From NCBI RefSeq assembly GCF_018977255.1, contig NW_024704782.1, positions 496,001 through 560,000 on the forward strand: DNA of 64,000 nucleotides, written 5' to 3'. The translations under genes and the position numbers were made by a program. Shown here piece by piece: positions 3,597 to 64,000 of this stretch. Below the pieces are notes generated by a model. The model worked only from the letters and a program-made list of their open reading frames with translations. It did no database searches and was not told the origin of the DNA. This stretch comes from Callorhinchus milii. Lineage: Eukaryota. How positions within the stretch are numbered: position 1 is the first letter of the stretch; every line of letters begins with the position of its first letter.

Positions 3597-3762
3597 NNNN
3601 NNNNNNNNNNNNNNNNNNNNNNNNNNNNNNNNNNNNNNNNNNNNNNNNNNNNNNNNNNNNNNNNNNNNNNNNNNNNNNNNNNNNNNNNNNNNNNNNNNNN
3701 NNNNNNNNNNNNNNNNNNNNNNNNNNNNNNNNNNNNNNNNNNNNNNNNNNNNNNNNNNNNNN

Positions 3763-13544: not shown

Positions 13545-14189
13545 ATGAGCGCCCCCTGGAGGGTGCGGACCGAACCTCGCGGGAGCCACGAGATCCGGGG
13601 GGGACCCTACTCGGTGCACGTGATCCAAGAGGGCTACGCTTACACGGACCCCGAGGGCCGGGTCCGGGCGGACGGCACCGTGACGCTGGTCAAGGGGCCG
13701 CGGGTGATCGTGGTGGACACGGGCAGCCCCGGCGACGGCCCCCTGATCGTGGAGGGCCTGCGGCAGCGGGGGGTGGCCCCGGGGGACGTCACCCACGTGG
13801 TGTGCACCCACGGCCACTCCGACCACGTGGGCAACCTGGGCCTCTTCCCTCAGGCCACCTTCGTGGTCTCGCACGACGTGTGTCGGGGCCACGTGTACTC
13901 GAGCCACGGCCTGAGCGAGGGGCAGGGGCTGCCCATCGACGGCTGGGCGGAGGTGCTGCCCACGCCCGGCCACTGCGCCCGCGACGTCAGCCTCCTGGTG
14001 AGGGGCACCGCGGAGGGGCAGGTGGTGGTGGCCGGGGATCTGTTTGAGCGGGAGGCGGACGAGGGCAGCTGGCAGGCGGTCAGCGAGAATCCCGCCCTCC
14101 AGGCCCAGCACCGCCGGCGGGTCCTGGAGCTCGCCGACGTCGTCGTGCCCGGGCACGGCCCACCTTTCAGGGTGATAAAGGGGCCGTGA
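13545..14189 (+). CDS. MBLAC1: Metallo-beta-lactamase domain-containing protein 1, single coding exon, 214 aa
   Basis: [24 protein letters not shown] (HxHxDH), TPGH, VAGDLFE and VVPGHG motifs; adjacent to CNPY4 and TAF6. AATAAA at 14570. Confidence 0.96.
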
Positions 14190-24800: not shown

Positions 24801-26625
24801 ATTAATAATAATAATCCTTGCATTTGATATCACATGGGCCTTATCACATCGTTCAGACATCTCAAAGCCCTTCACAGGATAATAATAATAATAGTAATAA
24901 GCATTGCACTTGATAGAGCCTTATCACATCATTGAAACGTCTCAATGTGCTTCACAGAATATACTGTAAAGTGTAGTGACTGTGTGTTTCGTGGGTGAAA
25001 CATGGCAGAAACTCAATTGCGCACAGCAGCGTGCCACAAAACGAGATGTAGAGCGAGTGAGCAATTATTATTATTATTATAATTTTTGTTTGGAGGGATT
25101 ATTACCCCCGGGAAAAGCGATCGCCAACCGAATAACAAGCGGGTTCCTAGTTACTGCTTAGTAGAGGCGTGTGTAGACTAAGGAAACTTGTCTGAGGTTT
25201 CGCCCTGATCTGACCTGACCCGGGTCCTCACTCCCCGTCTGTGCCCTGTTCAGGGGGTGGTTAAAGATCTCCACGGCGCTGTCAGAAAAAGAGAAGGGAA
25301 GTTTCAGGAGAAATATTTACAGAAAATTATCTTTCAACGCTTGTCCCCGAAACTCTGGAAATCCCAGCCCTACTCGCCCCCTTTGCCCACCTTCAGATCT
25401 TCCTCTTCGTCCGTGCCATTCCCCCGCGTCAGGCTCCGACACTGTTAAGCACTCCGTGACACTGTCCCATGTGAAGGACGCTGTGTAAACGCAGTTGTCG
25501 TTGTTGTTGAATCGCTAAACCTTTCCCCCCTGGCAGCGGGAGAAGTTACCTGTTTCAGCCCGAGTTGTGGGGTCGCTGTGTGGAGCCCAGAGATGTGGTG
25601 CTGTTTAATACCACGCTGTTCCTGACGCTGTCCTGCCTCAGCTCCCTGCAGTTCTTACTCTGCCTCATCCAGATGGTCAACGGGCTGTGCGGCTGTGTGT
25701 GCGGCACATGTCGCCAATCCAGGAACGTGGTACGTCTCACACACACAGACACGCCAACACACGGCAACACACCCACACTCCAAAACACACACACACACAC
25801 AGACATGCCAACACACAGTCATGCCAACACACACACACACACACAAGGACACACAGACATGCCGACACACAGTCATGCCAACACACACACACACACACAA
25901 GGACACACAGACACGCCAACACGCAGTCATGCCAACACACACCACAGACACATGCCAACACACAGACACGCCAACACACACGGGGACACACAGAAATGCC
26001 GACACACAGTCATGCCAACACACACACACGAGGACACGCAGACACGCCAACACACAGTCATGCCAACACACGCGCGCTGACACATGCCAACACACAGACA
26101 CTCCAACACACAGACGCACAGACATATCAACACAGACACACCAACACAGAGAAACATCAACACACGTGCGTGCCAACACACACATGCCAACACCCGGACA
26201 CGCCAATACACCGGCATGCCAACACACAGACAAATATGATGATGTGTTGACACGGATTAATACACCTCAGGATTTGTCCACAATTTTTCCATAATTCCTC
26301 AACTTGTTATACTCCGTGGGCGGAGACAGTCTGAATTTGAGGGGTTTGTGGGCGGAGCTCTCCTGAGGGGTTTGTGGGCGGGGCTATACAGGGGTGTGTG
26401 GGCGGGGCTACACGCGGGATTGTGGGTGGGACTATACTGGGGGGGGCTGTGGGCGGGGCTATACTGGGGCTTGTGGGCGGGGCTATACTGGGGCTTGTGG
26501 GCGGGGCTATACTGGGGGTTGTGGGCGGGGCTATACAGGGGGTTGTGGGCGGGGCTATACTGGGGGTTGTGGGCGGGGCTATATTGATGATTTCCTCTGG
26601 TTTTTGCCCACAGATCGTGGCCTAA
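18873..26625 (+). CDS. TM4SF/L6-family four-TM protein, copy A (TM4SF5/fish tm4sf21-like), 5 exons, 199 aa
   Basis: Exons 18873-19052, 23191-23256, 24526-24674, 25537-25729, 26614-26625, all GT-AG and in frame. Motifs MCTGKCSK, CIIANLFLFFPN, MGGILGSG, CCNNRCG, GSGYC, GLVKGPTC, YLFQPELWGRCVEP, IQMVNGLCGCVCGTC. The last mini-exon (IVA*) is less certain. Confidence 0.9.
19348..20690 (-). mobile_element. CR1-clade LINE 3' portion (RT C-terminus and tail) in TM4SF-A intron 1
   Basis: MVPGMRDLSYEERLAKLGLFSREQRRLRGDLIEVFK..TRGH peptide; CTATGATTCTATG-type tail. Confidence 0.85.
22080..22440 (+). mobile_element. Unclassified interspersed repeat, copy 2
   Basis: Highly similar to 4925-5290. Confidence 0.75.
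23688..23885. repeat. 30-bp minisatellite (CCCAACTAGCCCCAATCCCCCACTCGTACC)
   Basis: About six tandem units. Confidence 0.9.
24008..24370 (-). mobile_element. tRNA-derived SINE, full length
   Basis: Reverse complement of head, body and tail of the dominant family. Confidence 0.85.
25738..26235. repeat. CA-rich minisatellite (ACACAGTCATGCCAACAC) in TM4SF-A intron 4
   Basis: Degenerate tandem units. Confidence 0.85.
26345..26585. repeat. 24-bp GC-box minisatellite (TGTGGGCGGGGCTATACTGGGGGT)
   Basis: About ten units ending roughly 30 bp before the last TM4SF-A acceptor. Confidence 0.9.
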
Positions 26626-33000: not shown

Positions 33001-34540
33001 GCGTGTGTGTGAATGCTGTGTGTGTGTTGACACTGTGTGAGTGTGTGGACGCTGTGTGGGGGCACGCTGTGTTTGTGGGGGGACACTGTGTATGTGTGTC
33101 GATGCTGTATGTGTGGGGACACTGTGCGTGTGGGGATGCTGTGTGTTCGGGGGACGTTGTGTGTGAGGACAGTGTGTGGGGATACTGTGTGTGTGTGGGG
33201 ACACTGTATGTGTGTATGGACACTGTGTGTGGGGACGCGCTGTGTGTGTGTAGGGACGCTGTGTGTGTGGGGACACTGTGTGTGTGTAGGGACGTTGTGT
33301 GTGTGTGTGTGTAGGGACGCTGTGTGTGTGTAGGGACGCTGTGTGTGTGGGGACGCTGTGTGTGTGGACGCTGTGTGTGTGGACCCCGTGTGTGTGTGGA
33401 CCCTGTGTGAATGTGTGCGGACGCTGTTTATGTGTGTCGATGCTGTGTGTGTGCGCGGATGCTGAGTGTGCGCGGATGCTGTGTATGTACGCACGGATGC
33501 TGTGTGTGTGCGCTGTGTTAGACGCTGTCTCTCTCTGTATACAGATGTTGCTGTCGCTGGTCTTTGCTGTGGTGGGGATTGCGGGCTCCTCTTACTGTCT
33601 CATCTGCTCGGTGCTTGGTGTGGTGAACGGGCCCTACTGTCTCCATGAAACTGACAACGGCACTGAATGGGGCCGTGCCTTCCAGGTCGACATCACCAAA
33701 CTCAACATCACCAACTTAAAGTACGTTCATGCCTGGCACCGAGCCTGGCACTATTCTCAGGTTGGGACTGTGGGGGAAATAACAATTTGCATTTAAATAG
33801 CGCCCTTCACACAGAGTAGCGTTTGGCTCAGTGTCTCACTCTCGCTCTCGAGTCAGGAGATTGTTAGTTTGAGCCCCGCAGCAGTTGGGGGAGAGAGAGA
33901 GAGAGATGTGTGGTGTCAGAGATGTTAAACCCTCACTCACTTTCCGTCTGGGCCCCGTTCAGGGCGGACGTTAAAGATCTCCCGCAGCGCAGTCAGGGGG
34001 AAAGGAGAAGAGAGTTTCTCTCTCTCTCTCTTTCTCTCTCTGTGTGACCTGGCTGACAATCCCCCAGATACAATTGGTGACACACTTCGAAGAGAAAGGT
34101 TTTCAGATGTGACCTGAATAAGGGGGCAAGGCGGAGGAAGGGATTGGGGGGAGTGTTCCAGAGTTTCAGGGCGTAGTGGCTGAAATCGCGGCCACCAATG
34201 GTGGAACGGAGGCCACGAGGGACTGACTAGCAGGAGGCCGGAGTCGGTCGAGGAGAGGCAGCGGGTTGTGCGTTAGGGAGTCAGCAGGTGGGAGAGGGAG
34301 GGAGGTGTCGGGGTGAGGAGGGGTTTAAAGAGGAGTGTAACGTGATTGATTGCTCGCAGGGACACTCACTACCTGCTCAACTACACGCGATGGGACGAAT
34401 GTTTGGAGCCTCCTGATGTCGTTGTCTTCAATTTGGTGCTCTTCAACTGTCAGATCCTCTTCAGCTTCATCCAGTTGATCCTCTGCATCTGCCAACTCAT
34501 CAACGGGTTCTTTGGGACTCTGTGTGGCACCTGTAAATAG
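30048..34540 (+). CDS. TM4SF/L6-family four-TM protein, copy B, 4 exons, 199 aa
   Basis: Exons 30048-30224, 32526-32591, 33545-33720, 34360-34540 with the same intron phases as copy A. Motifs MCTGKCSKCIG, LGGIIGGG, CCSNRCG, GSSYC, GVVNGPYC, WDECLEP, QLINGFFGTLCGTCK*. Confidence 0.92.
32262..32472. repeat. 39-bp tandem repeat (GGTCACGGTGACGGGTTTCCGTGTGTTTCAGACACCTGGCT-like)
   Basis: About five units; single copies of the motif at about 22560, 28245, 29700 (reverse), 38258-38335 and 44495. Confidence 0.85.
32878..33530. repeat. GACGCTGTGTGTGTG minisatellite in TM4SF-B intron 2
   Basis: Degenerate tandem units. Confidence 0.85.
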
Positions 34541-35989: not shown

Positions 35990-36820
35990 CATCCTCAACC
36001 CCCACCACCACCACCCCCACCACCATCACCACCTTCACCCCCACCACTATCAACCCCACCACCATCACCACCACCATCAATCCCACCACCATCACCCCCA
36101 TCCCCACCATCACCCCCATCCCCACCATCACCCCCACCACCACCATCATCACCCCCATCACCTCCACCACCCCCATCCCCACCATCACCCCCATCCCCAC
36201 CATCACCACCTTCACCGCCACCACTATCAACCCTACCACCATCACCACCACTGCCATCACCCCCACCACCACCACCTCCGCCATCATCCCCACCACGACT
36301 ACCATCACCCCCACCACCACCACCATCACCCCCACTACCACCACCCCCACCGCCATAACCCCCACCATCATCNNNNNNNNNNNNNNNNNNNNNNNNNNNN
36401 NNNNNNNNNNNNNNNNNNNNNNNNNNNNNNNNNNNNNNNNNNNNNNNNNNNNNNNNNNNNNNNNNNNNNNNNNNNNNNNNNNNNNNNNNNNNNNNNNNNN
36501 NNNNNNNNNNNNNNNCATCATCCCCACTACCATCACCCCCACCACCATCACCACCACTGCCATCACCCCACCACCACCACCTCCGCCATCATTCCCACCA
36601 CGACCACCATCACCCCCACCACCATCACCCCCACTACCACCACCCCCACCACCACCGCCATAACCCCCACCACCATCACCCCCACCACCACCATCCCCCC
36701 ACCACCACCATCATCACCCCCATCACCACCGCCATCACCCCCACTACCACCACTATCACCACCACTGCCATCACCCCCACCACCACTGCCGCCACCACCC
36801 CCACCACCACTGCCGCCATC
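35990..36820. repeat. (CAC/CAT)n trinucleotide-type repeat with assembly gaps
   Basis: Low-complexity ACC/ATC repeats interrupted and followed by N runs. Confidence 0.85.
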
Positions 36821-39730
36821 NNNNNNNNNNNNNNNNNNNNNNNNNNNNNNNNNNNNNNNNNNNNNNNNNNNNNNNNNNNNNNNNNNNNNNNNNNNNNNNN
36901 NNNNNNNNNNNNNNNNNNNNNNNNNNNNNNNNNNNNNNNNNNNNNNNNNNNNNNNNNNNNNNNNNNNNNNNNNNNNNNNNNNNATAATAATCCTCACATT
37001 TGACCCAGGGTCTCATCACGTCTTTGAGACATCTCAAAGAGCTTCACAGGATAGACTGTAAAGTGTAGTGGCTGTGTATTTTGCTTGCTAAACACGGCAG
37101 CCAATTGCGCCCAGCAATGTCCCTACAAACAGTGAAGTGACCAAATTATTATTCGACAATTTTTTTTGTGGGGGGTTTGTTACCCCTGGAAAGCAATACG
37201 CTAATCTATCCAATCTATCTGGGTTCCTACTTACTGTTAGGTAAACAGAGGCGTGTGTATCGAGTAAGGAAACTTGCCCAACGTTTTGCCCTGCCCCGAA
37301 CGGGAATCCTCTCGCTTGTGAGGCGAGTGCTCTAACCACTACACAACAACAACAACATTACATGTGTACAGCGCCTTTCACGTCAGGAGGCTGGACGGTC
37401 AGAGTTTCGGACCCGAACTGGGGGGCAGGGGGGAAGCAGGGTGATCGAAAGCATGGTCAACAAGGAAGGTCTTGAGATGACACTACAGGATACCTCAGCG
37501 TGTCTCAAGCTGTCGGTCAGTCTCAGTACCCACCAGCACAGCCAGTACCCACCCCACCAGCACAGTCAGTACCCACCCCACCAGCACAGCCAGTACCCAC
37601 CCCACCAGCACAGCCAGTACCCACCCCACTAGAGCTCCACGGGCAATACTGAGGGCACTGTACAACACAATTCACATTTACATTTATATAGTGCACAGGA
37701 CTGCGCCAACATGTCTGTCAGATAATTAATAATAGGAATAAACCTTGTACGTTACCACCCCATCAGGACAGGATTCATTGTAAAGTGTAATGACTGTGTG
37801 TTAAGCGGCAGCCAATTTGCGCATAGCAGTGTAAAACATCCATGAAGCGAGCAAGTGATTTTATGTGGGGGTTTTGCGGCCAGGACAAGAGAAAGAGAGA
37901 GAGAGAGAAAAGCTTTTCCCGACAGTACCGTGGGAGATCTTTAACATCTCCCCCTCCCACCCGATGTGCAACTTAAACCCACAACCTCCTGAGTTAGAGG
38001 CTGAGCAAGAGCCTGAGCCAATGAATCTGATAAGACGAGGCCCTAAGATGATTATTAACAACAACAACAAAATTACATTTACGCCTTTCACGTCGGGAGG
38101 ATGTCCCTGGGCGCTGGACAGTCGGGGTGAGGACTATTAAAATCAAAATGAAACTTTCATTAGAAACAAAAGCTTTTCAAAGCTTCACAGCAAGTTTAGT
38201 GACTTTAAGTAAAGGTTTCAGTTTTTTTTAAGCTGACACAATCAGAAACCCAGCACCGTGATCAGCCGGGTGTCTGACACACATTTCCGCTTTTGTCAGA
38301 CACCCGGCTGATCACAAGGATGGGTTTCCATGTGTGTAAGTCACCAGGGTCTTTTGATCTGACCTCAACCGCTGCTCGTGGAAATTAATCCCAAGCCCTG
38401 ACCGGCCTCTGAGTGATCGGATTCTCTCTAACCTCACCCCTGACTCCACTGACAATCCTGAGATTCCTGCGACCCCCTTCTTCCCCGGCACCCACTTCCC
38501 ACCTATAGGGGAGTTTCTTGATCGTCCCTCTGTTGTCTTTGCTGACCCTTGGTCATGCCTCCCCAAGCCACCCCAATCTCTGCTCTAATGAGACACACAG
38601 ACGGCATCTCAGAGCACTTAACAGCAGCAGAACCGATGCCGAGCTGGTGGGGAGGTGACCGGTCAAGGAGGAAGGTCCTCAGGCACGACCTGAAAACGTG
38701 GAAAAAGCACAAGTGCCGATGCTGGAGGCCGGAGCGGGGGCAGCGGGTGTGGTGTGGGGAGACAGCAGGTTGGAGAGATGGGGGTTGGGGGGCGCAGAGA
38801 GTGAGGATCTTGAAATCGATCCGCTCTGTGACAGGGAGCGCAGCCTCTTCACACGGAACTGGAATTGGAGTTGGTTGCTAGGATTGCGGGGAAGGGTTGG
38901 CGTGAGTTGATTTGAAAGAGAATTCGATGGGAATTTGTGGAGGAAGTGGAAGTGGAAGCAACAACAAATGACATTTATACAGCGGCTTTCACACCAGGAG
39001 AACGTCCCACGGCACAGGACAGTAAGGGACCCGCCCCCAAGCTGGTGATTGGGATCAGGAGGGGTGGAGGGCAGCCAGGTTGAGAGTAGGAGGGTGAGAT
39101 GTAGGAGGGTGACCGAAGGCACGGTCAAACCAGAGGCTGAATTTCCGACCGCCAATGGTGGGGCAGGCAAGGCGTGAGTCGTGAAGCAGGCTGGAACCCG
39201 CTGAGCGAAGGGAGCGGACAGGTTAGCAGGTCACAGAGGGAGGAGCAAGGCTGTGGATGGCTTTGAAGGTGAGGACCAGGATCTTGAACTGTATCCTCTG
39301 AGAGATGGGGAGCCAATTGATATGTTGTTGAGATGTCTGAAAGCGCTTCATAGAACATACTGTAAAGACTAATGACTGTGTATTTTGTGAGCAAAATAAG
39401 ACAGTCAATGTGCACAGCAGTGTCCCACAAACAGTGGATTGAGTGACCAAATTTTTTTGGGTGGGATTATTATGCCCAGAAAGCAATCTGCCAACTGGGT
39501 TCCTGCTTACTGTTGGTAAACAGAGGCGTGTGTGTGCGGAGTAAGGTAACTTACCCAAGCTTTCACGTCACCCGGAAATCAATCCTAGATCCTCTCGCAT
39601 GCGAGGCGAGCGCTCTAACCATTACTCTATGGGATGAAATGATCAGACAGGAGAGGAAGAGCCGCGGGATGGGGGGAGGTTCGACTGTCACACACTGCTC
39701 AGTAAAGCTGTGCTTGTCTTCTTCCTTCAG

Positions 39731-45700: not shown

Positions 45701-46775
45701 TGAAGGTGCTGGACAGTCACGGATTTGGACCTGAGCAGGGAGGAGGGGTTGAGATATGGGTCTTAAAAAGTGNNNNNNNNNNNNNNNNNNNNNNNNNGTC
45801 TGCCCCGCCCTCTCCCAGCCTGCCCAGCCCTCTCCCAGCCTGCCCCGCCCTCTCCTATCTGTCACGCTTCCACACAATCATAAGATCCGAGTCTGGATGA
45901 AGAAGACACTGATCTGATCCCCACCCTCCAAACCTCCCGCCCGACCTCCTCCCCATCACAACTGCTGTTTAAAGGAGTCCCCGTTTCCTGTCCTCAACCC
46001 TCCCTCTTCCTCACAACCTGTTTCAGTCATTAATTTTCTCTGGGTAAAGAAAAACTTCCTGGGAGGGGAGGTGACCACAAGCAAGGAAGAGGAAAGTGTT
46101 AAGGAGAGATTTAAAGACAGATAAAGAAGGGGCGAATAGGAGGGGGGGGAGGGATAGAGGAGAAAGAAAGTCACACATCTGACTGGCCAGGGCTGCTCTC
46201 AGTCCGTCTTTATAAATGAATAATAATAAATCTTGCATTTGACATAGTGTCGTATCACGTCGTTGAGACATCTCAAAGTGCTTCACAGAATATACTGTAA
46301 AGTAGATTGACTATTTTTTAGGTAAAATGCGGCAGCCAATTGTGCAAAGCAGTGTCCCCACAAATAGTCGTGGATTGAGTGATTACATTTTTTTTAAGGG
46401 ATTATTACCCCAGGTTCCTACTTACTGCTGATAAATAGCGGCGTGTGTGTGAAGTAAGAAAGCTTCCCTCAGGTTTCGCCCTCCCGGGAATCAAACCTGG
46501 GCCCTCTTGCTTGGGAGGCGAGCGCTCCAACCACAAGGCTACAGGACTCCTAATGAAATCTCTTTGTCAACACAGGCACTTATTGGACCTATCAGATGTT
46601 TAGCGCTGACTTTGAGAACAAGGATTCCCCTGATTACTGCCACAAAGGATTCTATACCTTTGCCTTTGTCTCTGTGAACGTCACCTGCTTTGTGTATATT
46701 TTCCTGTCTCTTTTCCACATTTTCGCTCCAGTGTTGCTACCCCATCTGTTCAGCGGATCCCAAGATCTGGACTAG
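39731..46775 (+). CDS. TMEM272-like membrane protein, divergent exon set A
   Basis: Phase-1 exons 39731-39781 (ILLLLLVLVDVIYITV), 41352-41573 (AFIFLKSCPKGEMVPIYIIASG..GALLAA) and terminal 46576-46775 (GTYWTYQMFSADFENKDSPDYCHKGFYTFAF..QDLD*). Each is paralogous to an exon of set B. Confidence 0.65.
41665..41990. repeat. 20-bp minisatellite (GCCCCGCCCTGTCCACATCT)
   Basis: About 16 units; related units reappear at 45798-45856 immediately after a gap. Confidence 0.95.
42810..44816 (+). CDS. TMEM272-like membrane protein, exon set B (closer to family consensus)
   Basis: Phase-1 exons 42810-42860 (CLKTMMSAMSIAYITI), 43312-43515 (GTVYLNSCTQQHLIPIYLIVSG..LFSFIWFLT) and 44590-44816 (GNVWIYSIYEPDY..YCNRTLYLFAFW..*); AATAAA at 45112. 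Confidence 0.8.
45234..45592 (+). mobile_element. tRNA-derived SINE; further copies at about 46220-46550 (-) and 50836-51185 (+)
   Basis: GGAGTCCTG(C/T)AG head, shared body, ATTATTAT tail. Confidence 0.8.
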
Positions 46776-50290: not shown

Positions 50291-52944
50291 AATCAGGTTA
50301 TAGTTTTCATTTACTACGTTTGTACAGTTGATAATTTTGGTTCATAAACTTACTGTTATGAAATGTGAAACAATATGAAAGGTGAGATGTGACACCTCGG
50401 GAAATGGTAAAACGTTCTGCAATGTCAAATGATGAGACTCAATCTTGACTCTGCTAACTGCCGTAGACAGTCATCCACTTCCCTTACTCACTCTCTGCAC
50501 CTGCCTAAGGGGTCACCACCTCTTGGGGTTCAAGCGGAGTGGTGAGTGAGGTTGGCTGAGAGTTTGGGCTGAAAAATTAGTACAAGACTGTATTCAGCAA
50601 AAAAAAATCTGCTTTTTGTGGAAACTGGATGTTTCCTTCCTCTTTCCTTTCCTCATGTCTCTTTACTCACATTCCTCCTCTCTTTACCCATGTTCCTCCT
50701 CTCTTTCCTCATCCCTTTACCCCATATTCCTCCTCCCTTTACTCATGATCCTCCTCTCTTTCCTCATCTCTTTACCCCACACTCCTCATCCCTTTGCCCC
50801 ATGTTCAGCTTTCCTTTCCTTATGTTTTACTGGAGTGGAATCCTGTAGCTTATTGATAGAACTTGGGTTCAATTCCCAGTAGTGCAAATGGTTGGACAAG
50901 TTTCCTTAATCCACACACACCTGTTTACCTAACACTAAGTAGGAACCTGGTTGTTCGTCGATTGGCAGATCGCTTTTCTGGGGGTAATAATTCCTTCAAA
51001 ATAAAGAAAAATTATTTGGTCACTGAATCCACGATGATTTGTGGGACACTGCTGTGTACAATTGGCTGCTGCATTTTGCCCACAAAATGTACAGTCAATT
51101 CATTTTATAGTATATTCTGTGAAGCGCTTTGAGACGTCTAGAAGACATGATAAGGCGCAACATCAAATGCAAGAATTATTATTTTTACAACCATTATTTG
51201 GACAACAATAACATTACCGGAAATCAGTTAATGCCATTCACCATTTATTGTGAACATAACTTCCGGGAGTGACCTTCTACAATTCAAATCTGAAGAAAGC
51301 CAACAAGTTTGCCCTATGTTCTTCCTCCTTCCCACCCAAAAATGTAATTTGTTGTTGTTCTTACAATGTTTTTGGATACACTAAGAGGACACAAAACTGC
51401 AAAGGGCAATTTCAGAATAGACACAAGAGAGTGTTTTTTTAAATCCAGAAACGAATTAATGACAAGCACAGAATACCACGAAAGGTGGTTAAGTACAGGG
51501 TAATGGACTCACTTAATAAACAGCTCGGTGCTGTGATGGGAGGAAGTATGGGCGGCAATTAACGTGGCAAAAGACCTTCACCTGAATCTGTTTTCTGATC
51601 TTGCTTTCAAATATCTTGTCTTCAGGAGAATAAACAGTGAAAAAAATACCATGTGTTTACTGCAGGGAAAATGCACAGTTCTCATTCTTCTTTGTTTCCC
51701 TGTCACATGCTTTGCCCTCTGCCTCAGATTTTATAAATGGCGACATTTGGCACAGGTGTTGGAATGCCACGTTGATGTTGGCACTATACACTGGCACAGC
51801 AGAAACCACAGAACAAATTTACTGAGAGGATTGGCAGATAAATCCTAGATAAAATCAGAGAACAGTGTGTACTTTTTGCTCCTAGTCCAGGTCATCTAGG
51901 CTAGAAATTGGAACAAGCCTTTGATTGTGTTAAAGATAATTGGAGGATGACTCCAGGCAGGAAGAATCTGTGGTAAAGAAAAGGCAGAGAAGAGAAACAG
52001 CAGTGAATAGATTCACAAAAAGAGAGACGGTGCTGATAGCTGCCAAGTACAGTAGCAACCAGGAATACAGGAGAGTTTTTCACCCCGGGAGCAGAGACGG
52101 TTAAGAGGATTTAATTTAATAGAAGTTTTCAAAATTATGAGGGGATTCAATAGAATCATAGATTCGTACAGCATAAAAAGAGGCCATTCGGCCCATCGAG
52201 TCTGTGCCGGCTCTTTGAAAAGAGCAATGTAATGTAATGATAGGCTGAACAAGGAGAAACTATTTCCACTAGCGGTGGGTTGGTAACCAATTTCAAATAG
52301 TTGTTAAAAGAAACAGAGGGGAGGTGAGGAGAAATGTTTTCACATTTGAGTTGTTGGGATTTGGAATGCATTGCCTGAAAGGCTGGTGGAAACCGATCGA
52401 TAACATCTTTTAAGAGAGAAGCAGATAATTATTTGGGGAGGACAAGTTTGCAGGACTATGGGGAGAGAGCCGGGGAGTGGGGTTGATCAGGGCTATGGGG
52501 AGAGAGTGGGGGAGTGGGGTTGATTAGGGCTATGGGGAGAGAGCGGGGGGGAGTGGGGTTGAATTGGAAGCTCTTTTGAAAGAGCCGACACAGACACGAA
52601 GGGCCGAATGGCCTCCTTCTGTGCTGTATAATTCTATGATTCTATGATACACAGTCTATTCTGTCATACCGTCCCTAACAGCACCGAGTCCTGGGAAAGT
52701 TCAGATTTGTAAACTCCTGTGAATTGATTCTGGAATGTCCAGCGGAACTGTACAGTCTACAAAGACAGGTACCACAAGAATCCAGTGACCTGAGCAACTG
52801 AAGTATGGGCCATTTGTTATTCTGATTTCTTATTGTTCCATGCTGCTGCTCAAGCACATCGTTACTGATGTAATAATTATCTGTACAATCAAGATATATG
52901 GGGCCAAAGTGCCTGATAAGCATCCATAGAAGGTTCCTTTCTCC

Positions 52945-52952
52945 TATAAATA
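52945..52952 (+). promoter_or_regulatory. TATA box of the microexon gene
   Basis: CCTATAAATAG, starting 61 bp upstream of the ATG at 53006; GATA site TGATAA at about 52914. Confidence 0.75.
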
Positions 52953-53005
52953 GCAGCCACCTCACTACGGAAAGTCGCCTTCAGACTGACGAACTGACTG
53001 CAAGG

Positions 53006-56000
53006 ATGAAGTCCCAAAGCCACTACCTGTTGGCTGTGCTCGTAGCTGCGGTCTTGGCATCGTCCCTAGGTAATGATCATTCTTTCTCCAAGAGCGCTGA
53101 TACATTCTAAATCTCGATTGAACTCTTTTCCTTCAAGCGGCAAAGCTGTGGTCTCTCTGAGAGAGAGTTGCTCTGGAGAGATGGTGGGATGATATTGTGC
53201 TGCTGTCTGATATTGTGTACAGGTTTAGCCTGGGAAATAAGGCATAAAATGGACCTGACAGCCTACAGTACAGATCGGTTACCCATATGCTGAATATTTT
53301 ATGAAATAGACTGATTTTCAACAGATTCAAGAACCCATGTATAACTATAATCCTTGCATTTGGATGTAATGCCTTCTCACACGGCGCGATGTCTCAATAC
53401 TGTAAAGTGCAAAGTGGTGTGACTGTATTTTGTGTATGAACATGAGATCAGACTCCGCCTGTCAAGTGTTCTGGAACTCTTAATCCAAGTGAAGAGTGCT
53501 ATTTAAATATAATTTATTGGTTGTGGACGTGACATGTCAAGCGACTGCCAGGATGGTGGAAGGCAAACTAGATGTACCTTGGTTTTCTTTCGTCCTAGCA
53601 AATTTTTATGTTCTTATGCTGTTGTTGCCAAATCTCTCAGTCTTGTGAAATGTAAGCTGAAATTTAGTGCAGTTTCTATTCAGTGCTAATTTCTGACACC
53701 AGTTAATAACAATAATATTATAAAATATAAAGTTGAAATATTGTAACTCACAGGCAGGCAAAGAGCCACTGAGAACAATCGTAATAACTTGGTCACTTCA
53801 ATGCTCGACTGTTTGTGGGACGTTGCTGTGTGCAATTGGCTGCCATATTTCGGCCAAAAAATATACAGTCAATTCACTTTACAGTATAATCTGTGAAACG
53901 TTTTGAGACGTCTCGAAGACGTGATAAGGCGCTATATCAAATGCAAGTATTATATTATATCACATGCTTCATAATCTCGGTGCTTCAATATCAGTATCCA
54001 AAAGCCCCTCTGAAACTCACTCTCCGTTACAATTTACCCTCATTTTCATGTACACCGGTCTCAAACCTCTCAGATTTATAAGTCTCTACAGTCGTTACAA
54101 CAGTCCTGAGCATGTCATTCAGCTGGACCTCTGGCTTTTTTGTTCTTGGCATCATGCTCCGCCAGTCAAGCGCTCTGAGATGCTACCCTGCATGACAGGT
54201 GCTATCCAAATGCAAGTCGTTGTAGTTGGTGTAGTTGTTCCCTGGTCCTCCCCCCTTGAGTCCCAGCATCACAACTCTATACACTATCTCCAATTCCCAT
54301 CATTCTCATGGAATTTGTGATATTAAATTCCTCAAAGTTAGGAAAAAATGGCCTCTGACTGTTTGTACTCAATGTTTTATAAAAGATATTGTCAGGAAAT
54401 TATAGAGGTAAAATGTATAAAATGCATATGATTGCACATTACAGTTAACATAAATATCTTTAAATCTCAGGGAAGCATTACGAAGCTTCCGGATACCTCC
54501 CTGCAGGTAATACTCAAAAGTCAAACTGTTTCCTTTGCCTCAACGAATTAGTCAATGTTGCACAGCAATAATCATAACAATAAATTATAGAATAAAAAGT
54601 GTTGTTTACCCCATTGTGTCTGTGAGAGCGTTCATTCCCCCATTGGAGTTTGCTATTAATAAACCTCCTTTGCTCTTTCCCATTGTGTCTGCACTGCTGC
54701 TTCCTCACCAGTAGAGCTCTGTGCTCAACAACATGTTGCATTTGTGTTGTGTGAGGAATAGCACGAGGAGGAAATAAGGAGGGGAAGCTGAGTGACCAGG
54801 AGAAGGGTGGGGATTGGGCGAAGGGAAGGAGGACCCTGGGGTTGCCCTTGGTCTCCACGATGATCCTGGAGTAGCAGGACCATTTGGCTGAGGTTAGGCT
54901 GAGCGATAGGGTTTAGTATAATCCAGCCATGATCAGCCTGTTACCATGAGGCCAGATTTAAGCCACATGCATTTGGAGGCATGGGCCTGGGATGTGATGG
55001 AGCTGAGGTGGCTGTGGTACCAGGAGGATTGAGGGGGAGCAGACTGTGTGGGGTGTGATGGTGAGAGGGTGTTCAGAATGGTGGTGAGGGAGCTGTGCAT
55101 GCGATGCAAAGTTATGACTATTGATGTCAGCAGTGTTAATGTTGTAAGCAGTGATGTTGATTTAGTCAATCTTTATAATCTTTATAATCTCTTCTCTTGA
55201 CAGTTCCTGACCATGGTAAGAAACAGAATTGGCAATATTTGTTTCTTTAAATGTATGTTTTTATTCTTCATCGAGTCAATTGCAGCTCTATGACAAGATT
55301 TAAGGTATATGAATTTACAATATTGAAGAAAAGTAAACCTTTCCATGTTGCGTTATTTTGCTTTAGTTTGCGTTAATTGATTTAGTTGCTACTTTTAAAG
55401 TGTATGTAAATATCTAACTTGGTAATATTGGTAATATTTATATTGAATTCAGAATTTAAAGCTTATTGTTTAATTGGAAAAGGAGACAGTGTGTTTCCTG
55501 ATGGATTTCCATTCTCACGTTGTGGAATTGTTCAGATTCAGTACACAGAGAACCATAGAATCTTACAGCACAGAAGGAGGCCATTCGGCCCATCGTGCCT
55601 GTGCCGGCTCTTTGAAAGAGCTATCAATTAATCCCACTGCCCCGCTCTTAACCCTTAGCCCTGGCAATATTACCTTTTAAAGTACCTTATCTAATTCCCT
55701 CTTGAAAGCAATGTCGAATCTGCTTCCAGCACCGTTTCAGACAGTGCATTCCAGACTGTAACGACTCCCTGGGTAAAAAAAATTCTGCTGGTCTTCCCTC
55801 TGGTTCTTTTGCCAGTTATTTTCAATCAGTCAATCTGATTCAGAGTCAACATGTCTTTACAAAGGAGAAGTCATGCTTAACAAATCTTTTAGAGATTTTT
55901 GAAGCTGTATCTCGCAGGTTAGATAGAGGGGAACCAATAGATGCAGTAAATTTAAATTTTAAGAAGGCATTTGACAAAGTGCTGCACAAAAGGCTATTTA

Positions 56001-59000
56001 TTGCACAAGGTTAAGACCCACGGGATTAATGGGAACATATTCGCATGGATTGAAGAGTGGCTAACGGGAAGAAAACAGAGTGTAGGGATAAACGGGTCAT
56101 TCTCGAATTGGCAGGATGTGACTAGAGGAGTGGAGTCCTGTAGCTCAGTGCTTAGAGCACTCGCTTTGCAAGTGAGAGACCTGAGTTCAATTCCAGGCAG
56201 AGGGCCAAACCTTCTTTACTCTACACACCTAATAATAATCCCTCCAAAACCCAATACAATAATAAATTGGTCATTTTCAATCTACGACTGTTTGTGGGAC
56301 ATTGCTGTGCGCAATTGGCTGCCGCGATCGCCCTCAAATGTACAGTCAATTCACTTTACAGTGTGTTCTGTGAAGCGCTTTGGGACGTCCTCCCGACGTG
56401 AAAAGCGCTATATCAAATGCAAGGATTATTATTATTATAGAGGAGTTCCACAAGGATCAGTGTTTGGGCCTCAGCTATTTACAATTTACCTCAATGACCT
56501 GGACAAGGACATTGAATGTAACGTATCTAAATTCACGGATGACACTAAAATCGGTGGGAGAGTGAGCTCTGAGGATGATGCAAAAAGATTGTAATGGGAT
56601 ATAGATAGTCGAGGGGAGTGGGCGAGTCGGTGGCAGATGGAATTTAATGTGGGGAAGTGTGAAGTTATTCACCTCGGTGGCAAAAATAGAAAAACAAATT
56701 ATTTTCTAGAGGTGGAGAGATTAGATAGTGTTAGTGTTCAGAGGGATTGGGGTGTCCTTGTACACCAGTCCCAAAAAGTTAGTTTGCAGGTGCAGCAGCA
56801 ACTAAGAAGGCGAACGGCAGTTAGCGTTCATTGCAAAAGGTTTAGAGTACAAGAGAGGGAAGTCTCACTGCAACTGTATAGGGCTTTGGTGAGACCGCAC
56901 CGAGAGTATTGTGTGCAGTTTTGCTCCTTATTTAAAAAAGGACAAACTTGCCCTCGAGGGGGTGCAGCGTAGATTCACTCGGTTAGTTCCTGGGATGAGG
57001 GGACTGACCTATGAGAAGAGGCTGAATAAACGAGGACTGTATTCTCCAGAGTACAGAAGAATTAGGGGAGATCTTATTGAGACATATAAGATCCTTAAAG
57101 GGCTGATAAAGTAGTCACTGAGGGTCTGTTTCCCCCAATAGGAGAATCTATAACCGGGGACACAGCCTGAAAATTGAGGGTCAGCCTTTGAGAACAGAGT
57201 TGAGGAAACATTTCTTCACTTAGCGGGCAATGAGTTTATGGAATTCACTCCCCCAGAAGGCTGTAGATGTCAGTCCTTGAACATCTTCAAGGCTGAAACT
57301 GATAGATTTTTAAAAAATAGAGGGATTGGGGGATATGGGGATAGAGCGGGTAATTAGAGTTAGGTCAGAAGATCAGCCACGATCTTATCGAATGGCGGGG
57401 CAGCTCGAGGGGCCGAATGGCCGACTCCTGCTCCTAATTCTTATGTATGTTCTACTTTCAACCTCTGTCTTCTGGTTACTGCAAACAGTTCCTCCCTATC
57501 TACTGCCCTCAACCTTTTTTGCTCTAAAGAGAATAATCCTCAGAACTATTTAGATAATGTCCTCTCCCGCATCAATTTCTGTGACACTATCAGTCTCACT
57601 CTCGCCCGGCTCCACTAGCTCCTCACCCCCAAGAGGAAGGAGTTGAAAATCTTCATCCTTGCCTTCAAAACCCTCCATGGCCTTGCTCCCCTTTACCTCT
57701 GTGATCCAATAAGTCCAAACAGACTTGTCCGCACCCTCTGCTCTGTGCCCTCCGGCCTACTCTATATCCCCCAGTTCTGCCCATCCCATCATCGGCGGTC
57801 AGGCCTTCAGCTGTTCTGTCCCATCCTTTGGAACTCAATCCCACAGTTGCATTGCCTCAACCCCTGCCTTACCGCCTTCAAGGCCTGTCTGATGACCCTT
57901 CTTTTTGACCGCTCCTTCACCCTCCGACTTCTACAACCCTGTCTTCCACTCCTCCTGATCCCAACCACAGCTCGGATTGAAAGCGTTGACTGTCCAGCGC
58001 CTCAGGGCGTTTTCCGACGTGAAAGACGCTGTACAAATGTAATTTGTTGTAATTCACTCACTGAGCTTCTGACTCATGATAAAACATTCATATTAGATCA
58101 GAACACAGAAAAACAAGAGGAACTTTTACTGAGATCTGTAGTCTACCCTAGTCCAGGATCACTGCTGGTCTAACTGATTACCTGTCAAAAATTAAGTCCT
58201 GGATCAGCTCTAACTTTCTCCAGTTGATAGTCGACAATGCAGAGGCTCTCCTGCTTGGCTCCCAATCAATACCTTCTCACCCCACGCACAGACATCATCT
58301 GTTACATTGTCTACTTCTGCTACTTCCTCTCCCCTCAGACCGCCGATACCCTTATCAGCTTTTACCACATACAGGCTTGATTACACCCACACTCTGCTCG
58401 CTGGACTTCCCAACTCTTCCCTCCACAAGCGACAGCCTGTTCAGAACTCTGCAGGCCATGTCCTCTCCCGACCAAACCATTCCTCCCTGACTCCACCGGC
58501 TCTCCATCCCCCGGTGGATCGAGTTCTCACCTTTAAAGCCCTCCACAATCTTGTCCCACCATTTCTCTGTGACCTCTATCTGTCAAACCCTACCAACCCA
58601 TCTGCTCCCACCGCTTGGCGGGCACTGTCCTGTTCGCCACACCTCGGCGGTTGAGCTTTTAGCCTTTCTACCCCCAACTTCTAGAATTCCATCCCAGAGA
58701 CCCTTCGCCACGCCCCCTCCTTTGCCTCCTTGAAGGCATTCCTCTTTTACAGTGTCTTCTATTATTTTCCCACCCGCAACCCTTCGCCTCCACTCCTCCC
58801 AAATCTAACCACCAGCCCAGGTGCAAACCCTTGACTGTCCAATTCTTTGGCACATACATTGAAACATGTAAAACCGCTACAGAAATCGAATTTGTTGTTG
58901 TTGAACTGTGACATTGAATTCCTCAAATTTAGGAAAACATGGCCTCTGACTGTTTGTACTCAATGTTTTATAAAAGATATTGTCGGGAAATTATAGAGGT

Positions 59001-62000
59001 AAAATGTATAAAATGCATATGATTGCACATAGTTACAGTTAACATAAATATCTTTCATTCTTAGGGAAGAAATATGAATCTTCCAGATACCTCCCTGATG
59101 GTAATGCTCAAAAGTCAAACTGTTTCCTTCGCCTCAACTAATTAAAGACAAAATATTGTCATCGACAGGCTGTCTAGTCAATGTTGCACAGCAATAATCA
59201 TCAACATTAAATTATAGAATAAAAAGTGTTGTTTAGCCCATTGTGTCTGTGAGAGCGTTCACTCCCCCATTGGAGTTTGCTATTAATAAACCTCCTTTGC
59301 TCTTTCCCATTGTGTCTGCACTGCTGCTTCCTCACCAGTAGAGCTCTGTGCTCAACAACATGTTGCATTTGTGTTGTGTGAGGAATAGCACGAGGAGGAA
59401 ATAAGGAGGGGAAGCTGAGTGACCAGGAGAAGGGTGGGGATTGGGTGAAGGGAAGGAGGACCCTGGGGTTGCCCTTGGTCTCCATAATGATCCTGGAGTA
59501 GCAGAACAATTTGGCTGAGGTTAGGCTGAGCGATAGGGTTTAGTATAATCCAGCCATGATCAGCCTGTTACCATGAGGCCAGATTTAAGCCACATGCATT
59601 TGGAGGCATGGGCCTGGGATGTGATGGAGCTGAGGTGGCTGTGGTACCAGGAGGATTGCAGGGGGAGCAGACTGTGTGGGGTGTGATGGTGAGAGGGTGT
59701 TGAGAATGGTGGTGAGGGAGCTGTGTATGCGATGGAAAGTTATTACTATAGATGGGAAATAAGCGGTGATGTTGATTTAGTCAATCTTTATAATCTTTAT
59801 AATCTCTTCTCTTGACAGATTATGACATTGGTAAGAATCAGAATTGGCAATTTTTTTTGCCTTAAATGTCTGTTTTTCTTCTTAATCGAGTCAATTGCAG
59901 TCCTATGACATGATCTTAAGGTATATGAATTTACAATATTGAAGAAAAGTTATCAAGCCGGTGGGTACGTCTGTTTCTGTTATTCCTTGCCAAAAGCACT
60001 AAAACAGAATTGTCATAAACCTTTCCATGTTTTGCTATTTTGTTTAATTGATTTAGTTGCTACTTTTAAAGTGTATGTAAATATCTTAATTGATAATATT
60101 TATATTGAATTCAGAATTTAAAGCTTATTGTTTAATTGGAAAAGGAGACAGTGTGTTTCCTGATGGATTTCCATTCTCACGTTGTGGAATTGTCCAGATT
60201 CAGTACACAGAGAACCATAGAATCTTATAGCACAGAAGGAGGCCATTCGGCCCATCGTGCCTGTGCCGGCTCTTTGAAAGAGCTATCAATTAATCCCACT
60301 GCCCCGCTCTTAACCCTTAGCCCTGGCAATATTACCTTTTAAAGTACCTTATCTAATTCCCTCTTGAAAGCAATGTCGAATCTGCTTCCAGCACCGTTTC
60401 AGACAGTGCATTCCAGACTGTAACGACTCCCTGGGTAAAAACAATTCTGCTCGTCTTCCCTCTGGTTCTTTTGCCAGTTATTTTCAATCAGTCAATCACT
60501 GGTTAATGCAAGAGGAAACATTTCCTCCCTATTCACTCGATCAAAACGCCTCATAATTCTGAACATCTCTTTTAAATCTGCACTCAACCTTTTCTCCTCT
60601 TNNNNNNNNNNNNNNNNNNNNNNNNNNNNNNCATCAACCATTCTGCTATTACTTTCACTACACTGAGTTTCGATAGGTAACGTGATCACTACAGAATTTT
60701 GAAAACCAGGGAAAAGGGCTCAGTGAGGACTTACTCGGAGCAGTGCGCTGCCTTTTGAAATCTGATAGGCATTTCAAAATAAATATTTCAGTTATTTAGC
60801 TTGATCAATTTACCACAATCGACCAGTAATACCAAAGCTGAGTACACAATAAACATCCAGCTCACAGCAGCAATTCACATGAAATGTTTGAATTATCACA
60901 CTCCACAGCATCTACTTTCTGGCAACTAAATAGAAATATTGTTTTGAAATGATGTGAATTGACTGCAATTAACAGTTACTATAATCTGTTCTCTTCACAG
61001 GTGGTCTCGGTCTAGGAGGTAAGAATCAAAAGTCACAATATCTCTTTTGGAAAACACAGTAAACTCCTGAAAAGGTGCTCTTTTGATAAATAAGTAAACT
61101 CCTGACAAGTAAACTTGGGCATCGAGGGAAAAGGGCTCAGTGAGGATTATTCGGAGCAGTGAGCTACCTTTTGAAATCTCATATTCATTCCAAAATAAAT
61201 AGTTCAGTTATTTAGCTTGATCAATTTACCACAATCGAGGAGAAATACCAAATGTCAGTTTACAATAAACGTCCAGCTCACAGCAGCAATTCTCATGATT
61301 GTTTGCATTTTCAAACAATTCAGTTATCACACTCCACAGAATCTACTTTCTGACACTAAATCGAAATATTCTTGTGAAATGTAATTAATGTTGATTGACT
61401 GCACTCAACAGTTACAATAATCTGTTCTCTTCACAGCTGGTTATGGTTACGGTCTTGGAGGTAAGAATCAGAATTCACATTATCTCCTCCTTAAACCTAC
61501 ATCTGGGTCTCTACAGAGTTCTGCGACAGATCAGAGACCATTCTATGCCCCCAAAACACTCCTCGTAAATAGTATTTCCCTATCCTCTTTTGGTAAATAC
61601 AGTAAATTCCTGATGAGGTGCTCTTTTGATAAATAAGTAAACTCATGACAAGTAAACCAGGGAAAAGGGCTCAGTGAGGACTTACTCGGAGCAGTGCGCT
61701 GCCTTTTGAAATCTGATCGGCATTTCAAAATGAACATTTCAGTTATTTAGCTTGGTCCATTTACCACAATCCACCAATAATACCAAATGTGAGATGACCA
61801 TTAATGTCCAGCTCACAGCAGCAATTCTCATGATTGTTTGCATTTTCAAACAGTTCAGTTATCACACTCCACAGAATCTACTTTCTGACACTAAATCGAA
61901 ATACTGTTGTGAAATGTGAAGTGATGTTGATTGACGGCACTTAACAGTTACTAAAATCTGTTCTCTTCACAGCTGGTGTCGGTCTAGGAGGTAAGAATCA

Positions 62001-63889
62001 AAAGTCACAATATCTCTTATTCCACAATATTCCTGAGATGATATCCCCGATGTCAGTCGCACGCTCCTCACATCTCTGGTCAGACCGCTATCACCGGAGA
62101 TAATCCTCTATCACTGCGGATAATCCTCTGTCACGAGTGATAATCTACTTTCTGGCACAAAATATCAATATTGTTATGAAATGTGAGGTGATGTTCATTC
62201 AGTCACAACTGTGAAGAGAACAGATACGATAATGTGTTCTCCTCACAGTTGTTCATGGTTACGGTCTTGGACGCAGGAATCAGAATGCACAATACCTTCC
62301 ACCTTTTAAACCGATATCTGTCATTCCACAGAGTGCTGTGACAGATCACAAACTGTTCTATGCCCCCAAACACCGTGTGCAAATAGCATTTCCATATCCT
62401 CTTTTGGAAATCACAGTAAACTCCTGAGAAGGTGCTCTTTTGATAAATAAGAAAACTCCTGACAAGTCAACTTGTGACATCGAGGGAAAAGGGCTCAGTG
62501 TCGTGAAATGTGAAGTGATGTTGATTGACGGCACTTAACAGTTACCAAAATCTCTTCTCTTCACAGCTGGTGTCGGAGTCGGAAGTAAGATTCAAAAGTC
62601 ACTATATCTCTTATTCCACTATATTCCTGAGATGATATCCCCAGATGTCATTCGCACGGTCCGCACATCTCTCGTCAGACCGCTATCACCCGGAATAATC
62701 CTCTGTCACTAGTGATAATCTACTTTCTGGCACAAAATATCAATATTGTTATGAAATGTGAGGTGATGTTCATTCAGTCACAACTGGGAAGAGAACAGAT
62801 ACCATAATCCGTTCTACTCACAGTTGGTTATGGTTACGGTCTTGGACGTAGGAATCAGAATTCACAATGTCTCCTGCCTTAAACCTATATCTGACATTCT
62901 ACAGAGTTCTGCAACACATCACAGACCATTCTATGCCTCCAAAACAGTCTGTAACTAGCGTTTCCCTATCCTCTTTATGTAAACAAGTAAACTCCTGACA
63001 AGTAAACTTGTGGCATTGAGGAAAAAATGGCTCAGCGAGGACTAAGTCAGAGTAGTGAGCTTCTTCCTTTTGAAATCTGATAGGCATTTCAAAATAAATA
63101 TTTCAGTTATTTAGCTTGATCAATTTACCACAATCGAGGAGAAATACCAAATGTCAGTTTACAATAAACGTCCAGCTCACAGCAGCAATTCTCATGATTG
63201 TTTGCATTTTCAAACAATTCAGTTATCACACTCCACAGAATCTACTTTCTGACACTAAATCGAAATATTCTTGTGAAATGTAATTAATGTTGATTGACTG
63301 CACTCAACAGTTACAATAATCTGTTCTCTTCACAGCTGGTTATGGTTACGGTCTTGGAGGTAAGAATCAGAATTCACATTATCTCCTCCTTAAACCTACA
63401 TCTGGGTCTCTACAGAGTTCTGCGACAGATCAGAGACCATTCTATGCCCCCAAAACACTCCTCGTAAATAGTATTTCCCTATCCTCTTTTGGTAAATACA
63501 GTAAATTCCTGATGAGGTGCTCTTTTGATAAATAAGTAAACTCATGACAAGTAAACCAGGGAAAAGGGCTCAGTGAGGACTTACTCGGAGCAGTGCGCTG
63601 CCTTTTGAAATCTGATCGGCATTTCAAAATAAACATTTCAGTTATTTAGCTTGGTCCATTTACCACAATCCACCAATAATACCAAATGTGAGATGACCAT
63701 TAATGTCCAGCTCACAGCAGCAATTCTCATGATTGTTTGCATTTTCAAACAGTTCAGTTATCACACTCCACAGAATCTACTTTCTGACACTAAATCGAAA
63801 TAATGTTGTGAAATGTGAAGTGATGTTGATTGACGGCACTTAACAGTTACTAAAATCTGTTCTCTTCACAGCTGGTGTCGGTCTAGGAG
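53006..63889 (+). CDS. Unassigned secreted Gly/Tyr-rich structural protein encoded by phase-1 microexons; 3' end outside the window
   Basis: Signal exon 53006-53069 (MKSQSHYLLAVLVAAVLASSL, phase 1). Microexons: 54471-54506, 55204-55215, 59065-59100, 59819-59830, 61001-61018, 61437-61460, 61973-61990, 62249-62272 (GC donor), 62567-62584, 62824-62847, 63336-63359, 63872-63889. All are multiples of 3, stop-free and flanked by YAG and mostly GTAA. Confidence 0.82.
54315..55835 (+). repeat. About 1.5-kb segmental duplication, copy 1 (carries the 36-nt and 12-nt exons)
   Basis: Near-identical to about 58907-60497; paired ORFs 54514/59207 and 55474/60136. Confidence 0.9.
55836..57455 (+). mobile_element. 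CR1-clade LINE RT fragment, interrupted by a SINE
   Basis: WIEEWLTGRKQSVGING, GVPQGSVFGPQLF, SKFTDDTKIGG, MEFNVGKCEVIH, LEGVQRRFTRLVPG, RGDLIETYKIL; 3' GGCCGAATGGCCGACTCCTGCTCCT. Confidence 0.9.
56132..56437 (+). mobile_element. tRNA-derived SINE with 9-bp target-site duplication
   Basis: TAGAGGAGT at 56123-56131 and 56438-56446; removing the insert restores RT sequence VTRGVPQGS. Confidence 0.9.
58907..60497 (+). repeat. About 1.5-kb segmental duplication, copy 2
   Basis: Near-identical to 54315-55835. Confidence 0.9.
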
Positions 63890-64000
63890 GTAAGAATCAA
63901 AAGTCACAATATCTCTTATTCCACAATATTCCTGAGATGATATCCCCGATGTCAGTCGCACGCTCCTCACATCTCTGGTCAGACCGCTATCACCGGAGAT
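60690..64000 (+). repeat. Exon-containing tandem array with a 1,899-bp higher-order period
   Basis: Exons 61437/63336 and 61973/63872, and identical ORFs 61543/63442, are each offset by exactly 1,899 bp; the unit is made of 260-540-bp subunits with one microexon each. Confidence 0.92.

Follow-up and report, generated by a model that had tools for sequence, protein, structure and literature searches.

Secreted Gly-rich repeat proteins that are encoded by symmetric phase-1 exons are of a kind already known, and the gene described here is classed as a variant of that kind. Lamprin contains tandem repeats of the GGLGY type and is encoded by 7-8 exons of ordinary size, with all exon junctions belonging to class 1,1. 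Elastin uses symmetric phase-1 exons and carries Pro-rich hydrophobic motifs of the VPGVG type. The micro-exon genes (MEGs) of schistosomes are composed of a signal exon and symmetric microexons of up to 36 nt, which make up most of the coding sequence and from which variants are produced by alternative splicing. The gene under study lies in a 64-kb window (the whole stretch of DNA that was analyzed) of the genome of Callorhinchus milii, the elephant shark, and is composed of a signal-peptide exon, four short exons that form two charged cassettes, and an array of Gly-rich microexons. We consider it fairly probable that this locus is transcribed in the elephant shark and encodes a low-complexity protein that is secreted and whose Gly/Tyr/Leu array self-associates as a matrix. 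In PMC8887668, lamprin is treated as a lamprey novelty and lamprin-type proteins are seen as cyclostome inventions, and elastin as a gnathostome one.

All coordinates are positions of the window, and all exons lie on the plus strand. A bait covering 52950-53100 was represented by 10 sampled words, which were looked up in 12 listed sequencing runs, and the contigs of four of these runs (X1, X2, X8 and X6) were mapped on 52900-58899. The promoter and the first exon are as follows.

52945-52952, plus strand: TATA box TATAAATA, read from the sequence; the contig of run X1 starts at 52977, 32 nt downstream
52977-53069, plus strand: exon 1, with a 29-nt 5' untranslated region, ATG at 53006 and donor GTAATG; the X1 contig matches 52977-53067 with 0 mismatches

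The coding part of exon 1 (53006-53069) is 64 nt long and holds 21 codons plus the first base of a split codon. The ATG at 53006 is the first one past the TATA box, it has an A at position -3, and no ATG is found upstream of it in 52977-53005. Translation gives MKSQSH, a 12-residue hydrophobic core and SSL. This peptide has the form of a signal peptide, and from its sequence a cleavable leader and secretion of the protein are predicted. A first-pass annotation of this DNA had reported a TATA box and a signal-peptide exon, and both are present, the former at 52945-52952 and the latter from the ATG at 53006 to the donor that follows 53069.

The bait region was contained in five of the 12 runs. 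Four runs from 2025 held all 10 of the 10 words, and X1, a run from 2013, held a fraction of 0.70; X6 and X7, from the same study as X1, held next to none. The first X1 record is a 193-nt contig with a depth of 7.8 that matches the genome from 52977 to 53067 and departs from it at the exon-1 donor. The mean depths of X1 in the 200-base bins 52900-53099, 54300-54499 and 54500-54699 were 3.55, 1.21 and 0.27, which at a depth of 7.8 correspond to 91, 31 and 7 letters, respectively. The 31 and 7 letters correspond to 54469-54506, that is, to exon 2 preceded by an AG that is common to the end of exon 1 and to the acceptor. The depth of X1 was zero in the unique intron bins 53100-53499 and 54700-55499. 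The DNA-like run X2 had depth in 30 of the 30 bins, and one of its contigs crosses the exon-1 donor (52932-53184). Because the X1 contig departs from the genome at the donor and because 38 letters fit the AG plus exon 2, exon 1 and the first microexon are joined by splicing in X1, as judged from the position of the contig and the arithmetic of the depths. The 63 further letters of the contig equal exons 3, 4 and 5 (60 letters) plus 3, which is consistent with the inclusion of these exons and is not proof of it. The first-pass annotation had proposed that a transcript joins the exon at 53006-53069 to the microexons; this holds for the joining of exon 1 to exon 2, and we infer the inclusion of exons 3-5 and of the array. 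That the gene and its 5' splicing are real is, in our view, very likely.

The four exons that follow exon 1 form two cassettes.

54471-54506, plus strand: microexon 2, 36 nt, phase 1-1, G-KHYEASGYLPA; the X1 depth figures place contig letters here
55204-55215, plus strand: microexon 3, 12 nt, V-PDH; derived by script, its inclusion in the mRNA being suggested by the remaining letters of the X1 contig
59065-59100, plus strand: microexon 4, 36 nt, G-KKYESSRYLPD; a paralogue of exon 2, from which it differs at 7 of 36 positions
59819-59830, plus strand: microexon 5, 12 nt, D-YDI; a paralogue of exon 3, from which it differs at 5 of 12 positions

Both cassettes follow the formula G-K-(H/K)-Y-E-x-S-x-Y-L-P-x plus a 4-residue exon, and they represent two diverged copies. 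Exons 2 and 3 were duplicated together with their introns to give exons 4 and 5, and the aligned length of the copies is 1.5 kb. When the two copies were compared, with 142 gap columns set aside, 52 of 1455 intron positions differed and 12 of 48 exon positions differed (odds ratio 9.0, Fisher p 2.6e-7). In the phase-1 reading, 11 of the 12 exon changes are non-synonymous (hand count). Selection acts on the cassette exons, either to drive them apart or to keep them distinct despite conversion, because they change seven times faster than their own introns. The flanks of the 12-nt exons 3 and 5 are those of the array exons, with the acceptor ataatctcttctcttgacag and the donor gtaaga.

The exons of the Gly-rich array are as follows.

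61001-61018, plus strand: array exon, 18 nt, G-GLGLG
61437-61460, plus strand: array exon, 24 nt, A-GYGYGLG
61973-61990, plus strand: array exon, 18 nt, A-GVGLG
62249-62272, plus strand: doubtful exon, 24 nt, V-VHGYGLG, donor GCAGGA; the acceptor lies within a strong hairpin
62567-62584, plus strand: array exon, 18 nt, A or P-GVGVG, last base A
62824-62847, plus strand: array exon, 24 nt, I-GYGYGLG, donor GTAGGA, last base C; weaker hairpin at the acceptor
63336-63359, plus strand: array exon, 24 nt, P-GYGYGLG, identical to 61437-61460
63872-63889, plus strand: array exon, 18 nt, A-GVGLG, identical to 61973-61990; the array passes the end of the window

Eleven microexons (exons 2-5 and seven in the array) have AG and GT splice sites and pyrimidine tracts, have lengths divisible by 3, and carry no stop in phase 1. 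All of the junction-bearing exons (12 of 12) are phase 1-1, and phase 0 would give a TAG in the 18-nt exons that contain CTAGGAG. Since every microexon is symmetric in phase 1, any subset of them can be spliced without a break of the frame. The exon at 62249-62272 is doubtful because GCAGGA replaces the GT donor and because it carries two residue changes: it is the sole copy without a GT donor, and it has also lost one Gly and one Tyr. If it is skipped, the next junction codon encodes Ala instead of Pro. At least 12 microexons of 12, 18, 24 or 36 nt, all phase 1-1, had been claimed in the first-pass annotation. Eleven of them are canonical, while the twelfth is this GC-donor exon; the peptides proposed for the individual exons agree with ours as written, except that the PGVGVG junction becomes Ala when 62249-62272 is skipped.

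The array reads as units of GGLGLG, xGYGYGLG, xGVGLG and xGVGVG, with Gly at every second residue. The seven exons without the doubtful one encode 48 residues (Gly 25, Leu 7, Tyr 6, Val 4, Ala 4, Ile 1 and Pro 1 by a hand count that includes the junction codons). The array is thus approximately 52% Gly, 15% Leu, 12% Tyr, 8% Val and 8% Ala, and Pro is confined to one or two junction codons. A composition of this kind, in which Gly alternates with aromatic and aliphatic residues and Pro is nearly absent, is shared by lamprin, some hydrophobic exons of elastin and several invertebrate materials. The array copies represent one module that is composed of the exon and approximately 100 nt of intron on each side. 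In the aligned windows of exon plus flanks, the mean column identity is approximately 73%, and the copies keep the AG, the GT and a length divisible by three. Between the 24-nt exons at 61437 and 62824, only the first and last bases are changed, which affects the junction codons alone, and 4 of 18 positions separate the 18-nt exons at 61973 and 62567. The most recent duplication produced a higher-order unit of 1.9 kb: 61100-62101 and 62999-64000 share 980 of 996 aligned bases (98.4%, introns included), an identity that reflects either a very recent duplication or partly an effect of the assembly. Given this recent higher-order duplication, the array almost certainly continues past the end of the window at 64000.

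An antisense copy of the acceptor motif lies approximately 10 nt upstream of the acceptors at 62249 and 62824 and pairs with them as a hairpin (62205-62253 and 62780-62828). The predicted fold of 62200-62280 has an energy of -31.2 kcal/mol (z -4.46; 0 of 200 shuffles were as good), and the fold of 62775-62855 has an energy of -21.5 kcal/mol (z -1.82). For two control acceptors that lack the antisense copy, the z values of the folds were +0.27 and +0.86. The stronger of the two hairpins is located at the exon that lacks a GT donor (62249-62272).

A scan for exons was performed over the whole 64 kb with strict settings, which were a pyrimidine-rich acceptor, a GTAAG, GTAAT or GTAGG donor, a length of 9-60 nt and an open phase 1. 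The plus strand gave 13 candidates, of which 10 were exons of the gene and 3 were located elsewhere, and the minus strand gave 4 candidates with 0 in the gene region; exon 2 falls just below the pyrimidine cut-off of the scan (9/15). The 16-mer shared by the acceptors was matched 14 times with three or fewer mismatches, compared to 0.74 matches expected, and none of 100 shuffles reached 14. Ten of these matches are at acceptors, two are antisense in array introns, and two are elsewhere. The counts from the scan and from the motif search are not independent events because the exons are copies of one module. This last point is what could be said for the reading in which there is no gene at all and a satellite-like repeat carries splice-like motifs by chance, since the module takes in approximately 100 nt of intron on each side and the motif counts therefore reflect duplication. 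The spliced contig that begins at the TATA-defined site contradicts this reading, as do the good context of the ATG and the typical hydrophobic leader. A single phase is also kept over four different exon lengths despite the approximately 73% identity of the flanks, and the exon-specific divergence of the cassettes is significant. We regard a satellite without a gene as hardly credible.

A run of N (60602-60631), an assembly gap, interrupts the intron that separates exon 5 from the first exon of the array. To the left of the gap, a dispersed repeat with further copies at 55718, 27264, 52397 and 23949 gives way to 104 unique bases, and to the right, 71 unique bases precede an intron of the array type. 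The gap touches no exon, and the reading frame is independent of it because every exon is symmetric; additional exons may lie inside it.

It could be argued that exons 1-5 are a small expressed gene and that its mRNA does not include the Gly-rich array, which would be a relic of exon-module duplication that is either not expressed or separate. The gap falls between the two parts, the transcript mapping spanned 52900-58899 and yielded nothing for the array, and one array copy is already without a GT donor. Furthermore, with copies up to 98.4% identical including introns, intact splice sites could simply be young. However, the older copies, with approximately 73% mean column identity in their flanks, also keep AG, GT and multiples of 3. 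Exons 3 and 5 carry the array-type flanks ataatctcttctcttgacag and gtaaga, which points to one module family within one gene, and the array exons keep phase 1 open, the same phase that is set by exon 1. No other signal exon or first exon precedes the array, and the X1 contig would continue for 3 letters after exon 5, as predicted, is complete. A relic outside of the mRNA is unlikely in our judgment, and it is likely that the array belongs to the same mRNA as exons 1-5.

The rapid change of the cassette exons, at approximately seven times the rate of the introns and with nearly all changes non-synonymous, is typical of genes involved in conflict or reproduction. The gene could accordingly be read as encoding the precursor of a secreted peptide that acts in defence or reproduction, such as a Gly/Tyr-rich antimicrobial peptide or an egg-coat protein, with microexons combined into variants as in the schistosome MEGs. 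All exons are symmetric so that skipping keeps the frame, the hairpins over two array acceptors could modulate exon use, and expression was found in one of the three mapped runs that were guessed to be RNA. Yet no alternative isoform was seen, with a single contig covering the 5' end, and the array units have been homogenized, with identical exons at 61437/63336 and 61973/63872. A long, monotonous Gly-x repeat is also more typical of a material. This precursor seems rather improbable to us.

The elephant-shark tropoelastin gene (eln) is another candidate, in which case the window would hold the 5' end of an already annotated gene with its cross-link exons and C-terminus beyond the window. The locus agrees with eln in its signal peptide, its symmetric phase-1 exons and its Gly/Val/Leu-rich units, and the end of the window does cut the gene. 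In PMC12733013, the devil-ray eln is described with 70 exons, which are 36 and 48 nt long, so cartilaginous-fish eln may consist of many very short exons. According to the same source, however, fish eln encodes a signal peptide, alternating hydrophobic and KA/KP cross-link exons and a Cys-containing basic end, and it lies next to limk1 and septin4/5 with a single exception among 51 jawed fishes that include the elephant shark. At our locus, 7 to 8 consecutive array exons are without Lys, Pro is found only at a junction codon, and Tyr makes up approximately 12%. A permissive scan of 60632-64000 gave 17 Lys-containing open pieces between AG and GT or GC, none of which was Ala/Pro-Lys-like; they are read-throughs of known exons or have poor acceptors. 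Pro-rich motifs of the VPGVG type are absent among the array residues in the window. When six upstream open reading frames (ORFs), chosen from 67 ORFs of at least 120 aa, were scanned against Pfam, none belonged to the kinase, LIM or septin families; the matches were to Lactamase_B, L6_membrane (twice) and RVT_1 (twice), and one ORF was without a match. The earlier statement that the window shows neither a Lys-Ala cross-link domain nor a collagen Gly-X-Y repeat is borne out by the permissive Lys scan and by the exon translations. That the locus is the 5' end of eln is very unlikely, and the gene is probably not elastin.

Several observations weigh against a transcribed gene whose array forms a matrix. 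X1 is a run from 2013 that is RNA by guess only, and the depth of its contig is low (7.8). The joint between exon 1 and exon 2 was not among the 15 joints listed (841 further joints exist). The mapped range of 52900-58899 ends before the Gly-rich array (61001-63889), and the assembly gap separates the cassettes from the array. Among the three mapped runs guessed to be RNA, one shows expression; X6 and X8 had no signal at the exons within 52900-58899, and expression is therefore narrow or weak. The 3' end, the stop codon and the poly(A) site fall outside of the window. The faster change of the exons compared to the introns is no less in keeping with a protein for defence or reproduction than with a conservative matrix protein, and the matrix role, which is argued from composition, is plausible at about an even chance.

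If the product of this transcribed gene is nevertheless a self-associating matrix protein, the following mechanism may be proposed. Transcription starts at approximately 52977 behind the TATA box, and exon 1 would supply a cleavable signal peptide. The mature protein would begin with two charged Tyr/Lys cassettes and continue as a long x-G-(Y/V)-G-(Y)-G-L/V-G run. The array has been built by repeated duplication of the exon-plus-intron module, with the 1.9-kb higher-order unit as the latest step. The Gly/aromatic/aliphatic repeat is predicted to self-associate outside of the cell into an insoluble or gel-like matrix, in the manner of lamprin, the hydrophobic domains of elastin and other Gly-Tyr-Leu materials, and the Tyr residues, together with the Lys residues of the N-terminal cassettes, are candidate sites for cross-links. 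Judged by its Pro/Gly content, a sequence of this type falls close to the line that divides rubber-like proteins from those that form beta-sheets. As for the tissue, egg capsule, fin ray, cartilage and skin are guesses. In a broader and quite tentative proposal, chimaeras or all jawed vertebrates would possess, beside elastin, a third kind of self-assembling non-collagen matrix protein, which would be a lamprin-like Gly/Tyr/Leu protein made entirely from an expandable set of symmetric exons of 12-24 nt. Its length and junction residues would be set by module duplication and possibly by hairpin-controlled exon choice, and its cassettes would be under diversifying selection.

Other features of the window were noted. 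An intact 214-aa ORF at 13545-14189 (plus strand) matches the metallo-beta-lactamase fold (Pfam Lactamase_B, E 3.5e-17) and is probably a single-exon MBLAC1-like gene, the name being a guess. The ORFs at 24472-24882 and 33299-33796 (both plus strand) both match the L6 membrane protein (TM4SF) family, over one and the same segment (E 8.7e-14 and 3.7e-12), which suggests two tandem TM4SF paralogues between simple-repeat tracts. At 55837-58900, intron 3 contains a fragment of a LINE reverse transcriptase (RVT_1, 55971-56591) that is interrupted by a tRNA-headed SINE (Rfam tRNA, 56138-56200), and the repeats of this intron had very high depth in all four mapped runs. Rfam gave three tRNA-like matches only in the window, which were taken as SINE heads, and none of them is in the gene. 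The upstream 52 kb (1-52000) are unusually rich in G+C-skewed minisatellites, with 78 tandem-repeat rows, and four other N gaps are located upstream (3597-3762, 36373-36515, 36821-36983 and 45773-45797).

The locus matters in several respects. A chimaera Gly/Tyr/Leu repeat protein with the exon phase of lamprin would be a test case for shared ancestry as opposed to repeated origin. With a largest coding exon of 64 nt and a smallest of 12 nt, the locus represents coding sequence that is missed by ORF-based annotators and by many splice-aware ones. It also shows the growth of a protein repeat through duplication of whole exon-intron modules, and its N-terminal cassettes, whose exons change seven times faster than the introns, are a candidate for positive selection. 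If the locus is already in RefSeq as an uncharacterized locus, the gene would not be new, and its reading would be.

Two other protein families can be set aside. Collagen was rejected since Gly occurs at every second residue of the array and there is no Gly-X-Y. SCPP genes have phase-0 introns throughout, whereas all introns here are phase 1, and the earlier exclusion of this family on the same grounds is sound. Actinodin, egg-capsule proteins and keratin-associated Gly/Tyr proteins were also considered as candidates. A limited search of the literature on the array motifs found no cartilaginous-fish or vertebrate matrix protein, and an equally limited search on elephant-shark Gly-rich or Tyr proteins, egg case and oviducal gland, microexon Gly-rich proteins and actinodin found nothing that bears on this protein.

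The schistosome MEGs are similar in architecture only, in that a signal exon precedes a string of symmetric microexons and the exons evolve fast. They are flatworm genes that share no sequence with this gene, and their exons differ from one another and are alternatively spliced, whereas most exons here are near-copies that encode a monotonous repeat. The suckerins of squid ring teeth, like other structural proteins rich in Gly, Tyr and Leu, are similar in composition only, through Gly-Tyr-Leu repeats and the GGLGY/GLGYG motifs mentioned in papers on such materials; they come from invertebrates, their genes are built differently, and they have blocks rich in Ala and His.

The locus resembles both elastin and lamprin, and it does not fit either one. 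Tropoelastin and the protein described here have in common the signal peptide, symmetric phase-1 exons, Gly/Val/Leu hydrophobic units and growth by exon duplication. Unlike tropoelastin, our protein has no alternating Lys cross-link exons, almost no Pro and much Tyr, and it has a charged Tyr/Lys cassette at the N-terminus. Lamprin is likewise a secreted non-collagen protein that is rich in Gly, Tyr, Leu and Val and built of short tandem Gly-x units, and its class 1,1 junctions correspond to the phase 1-1 junctions found throughout this gene. The motif is G(Y/V)G(Y)GLG here versus GGLGY in lamprin, and an array of 12-24-nt exons is found here versus 7-8 ordinary exons. Lamprin has a self-aggregating matrix role and has been called elastin-like, and a similar role is predicted for our protein, whose mode of action may be like that of lamprin or of the hydrophobic domains of elastin.

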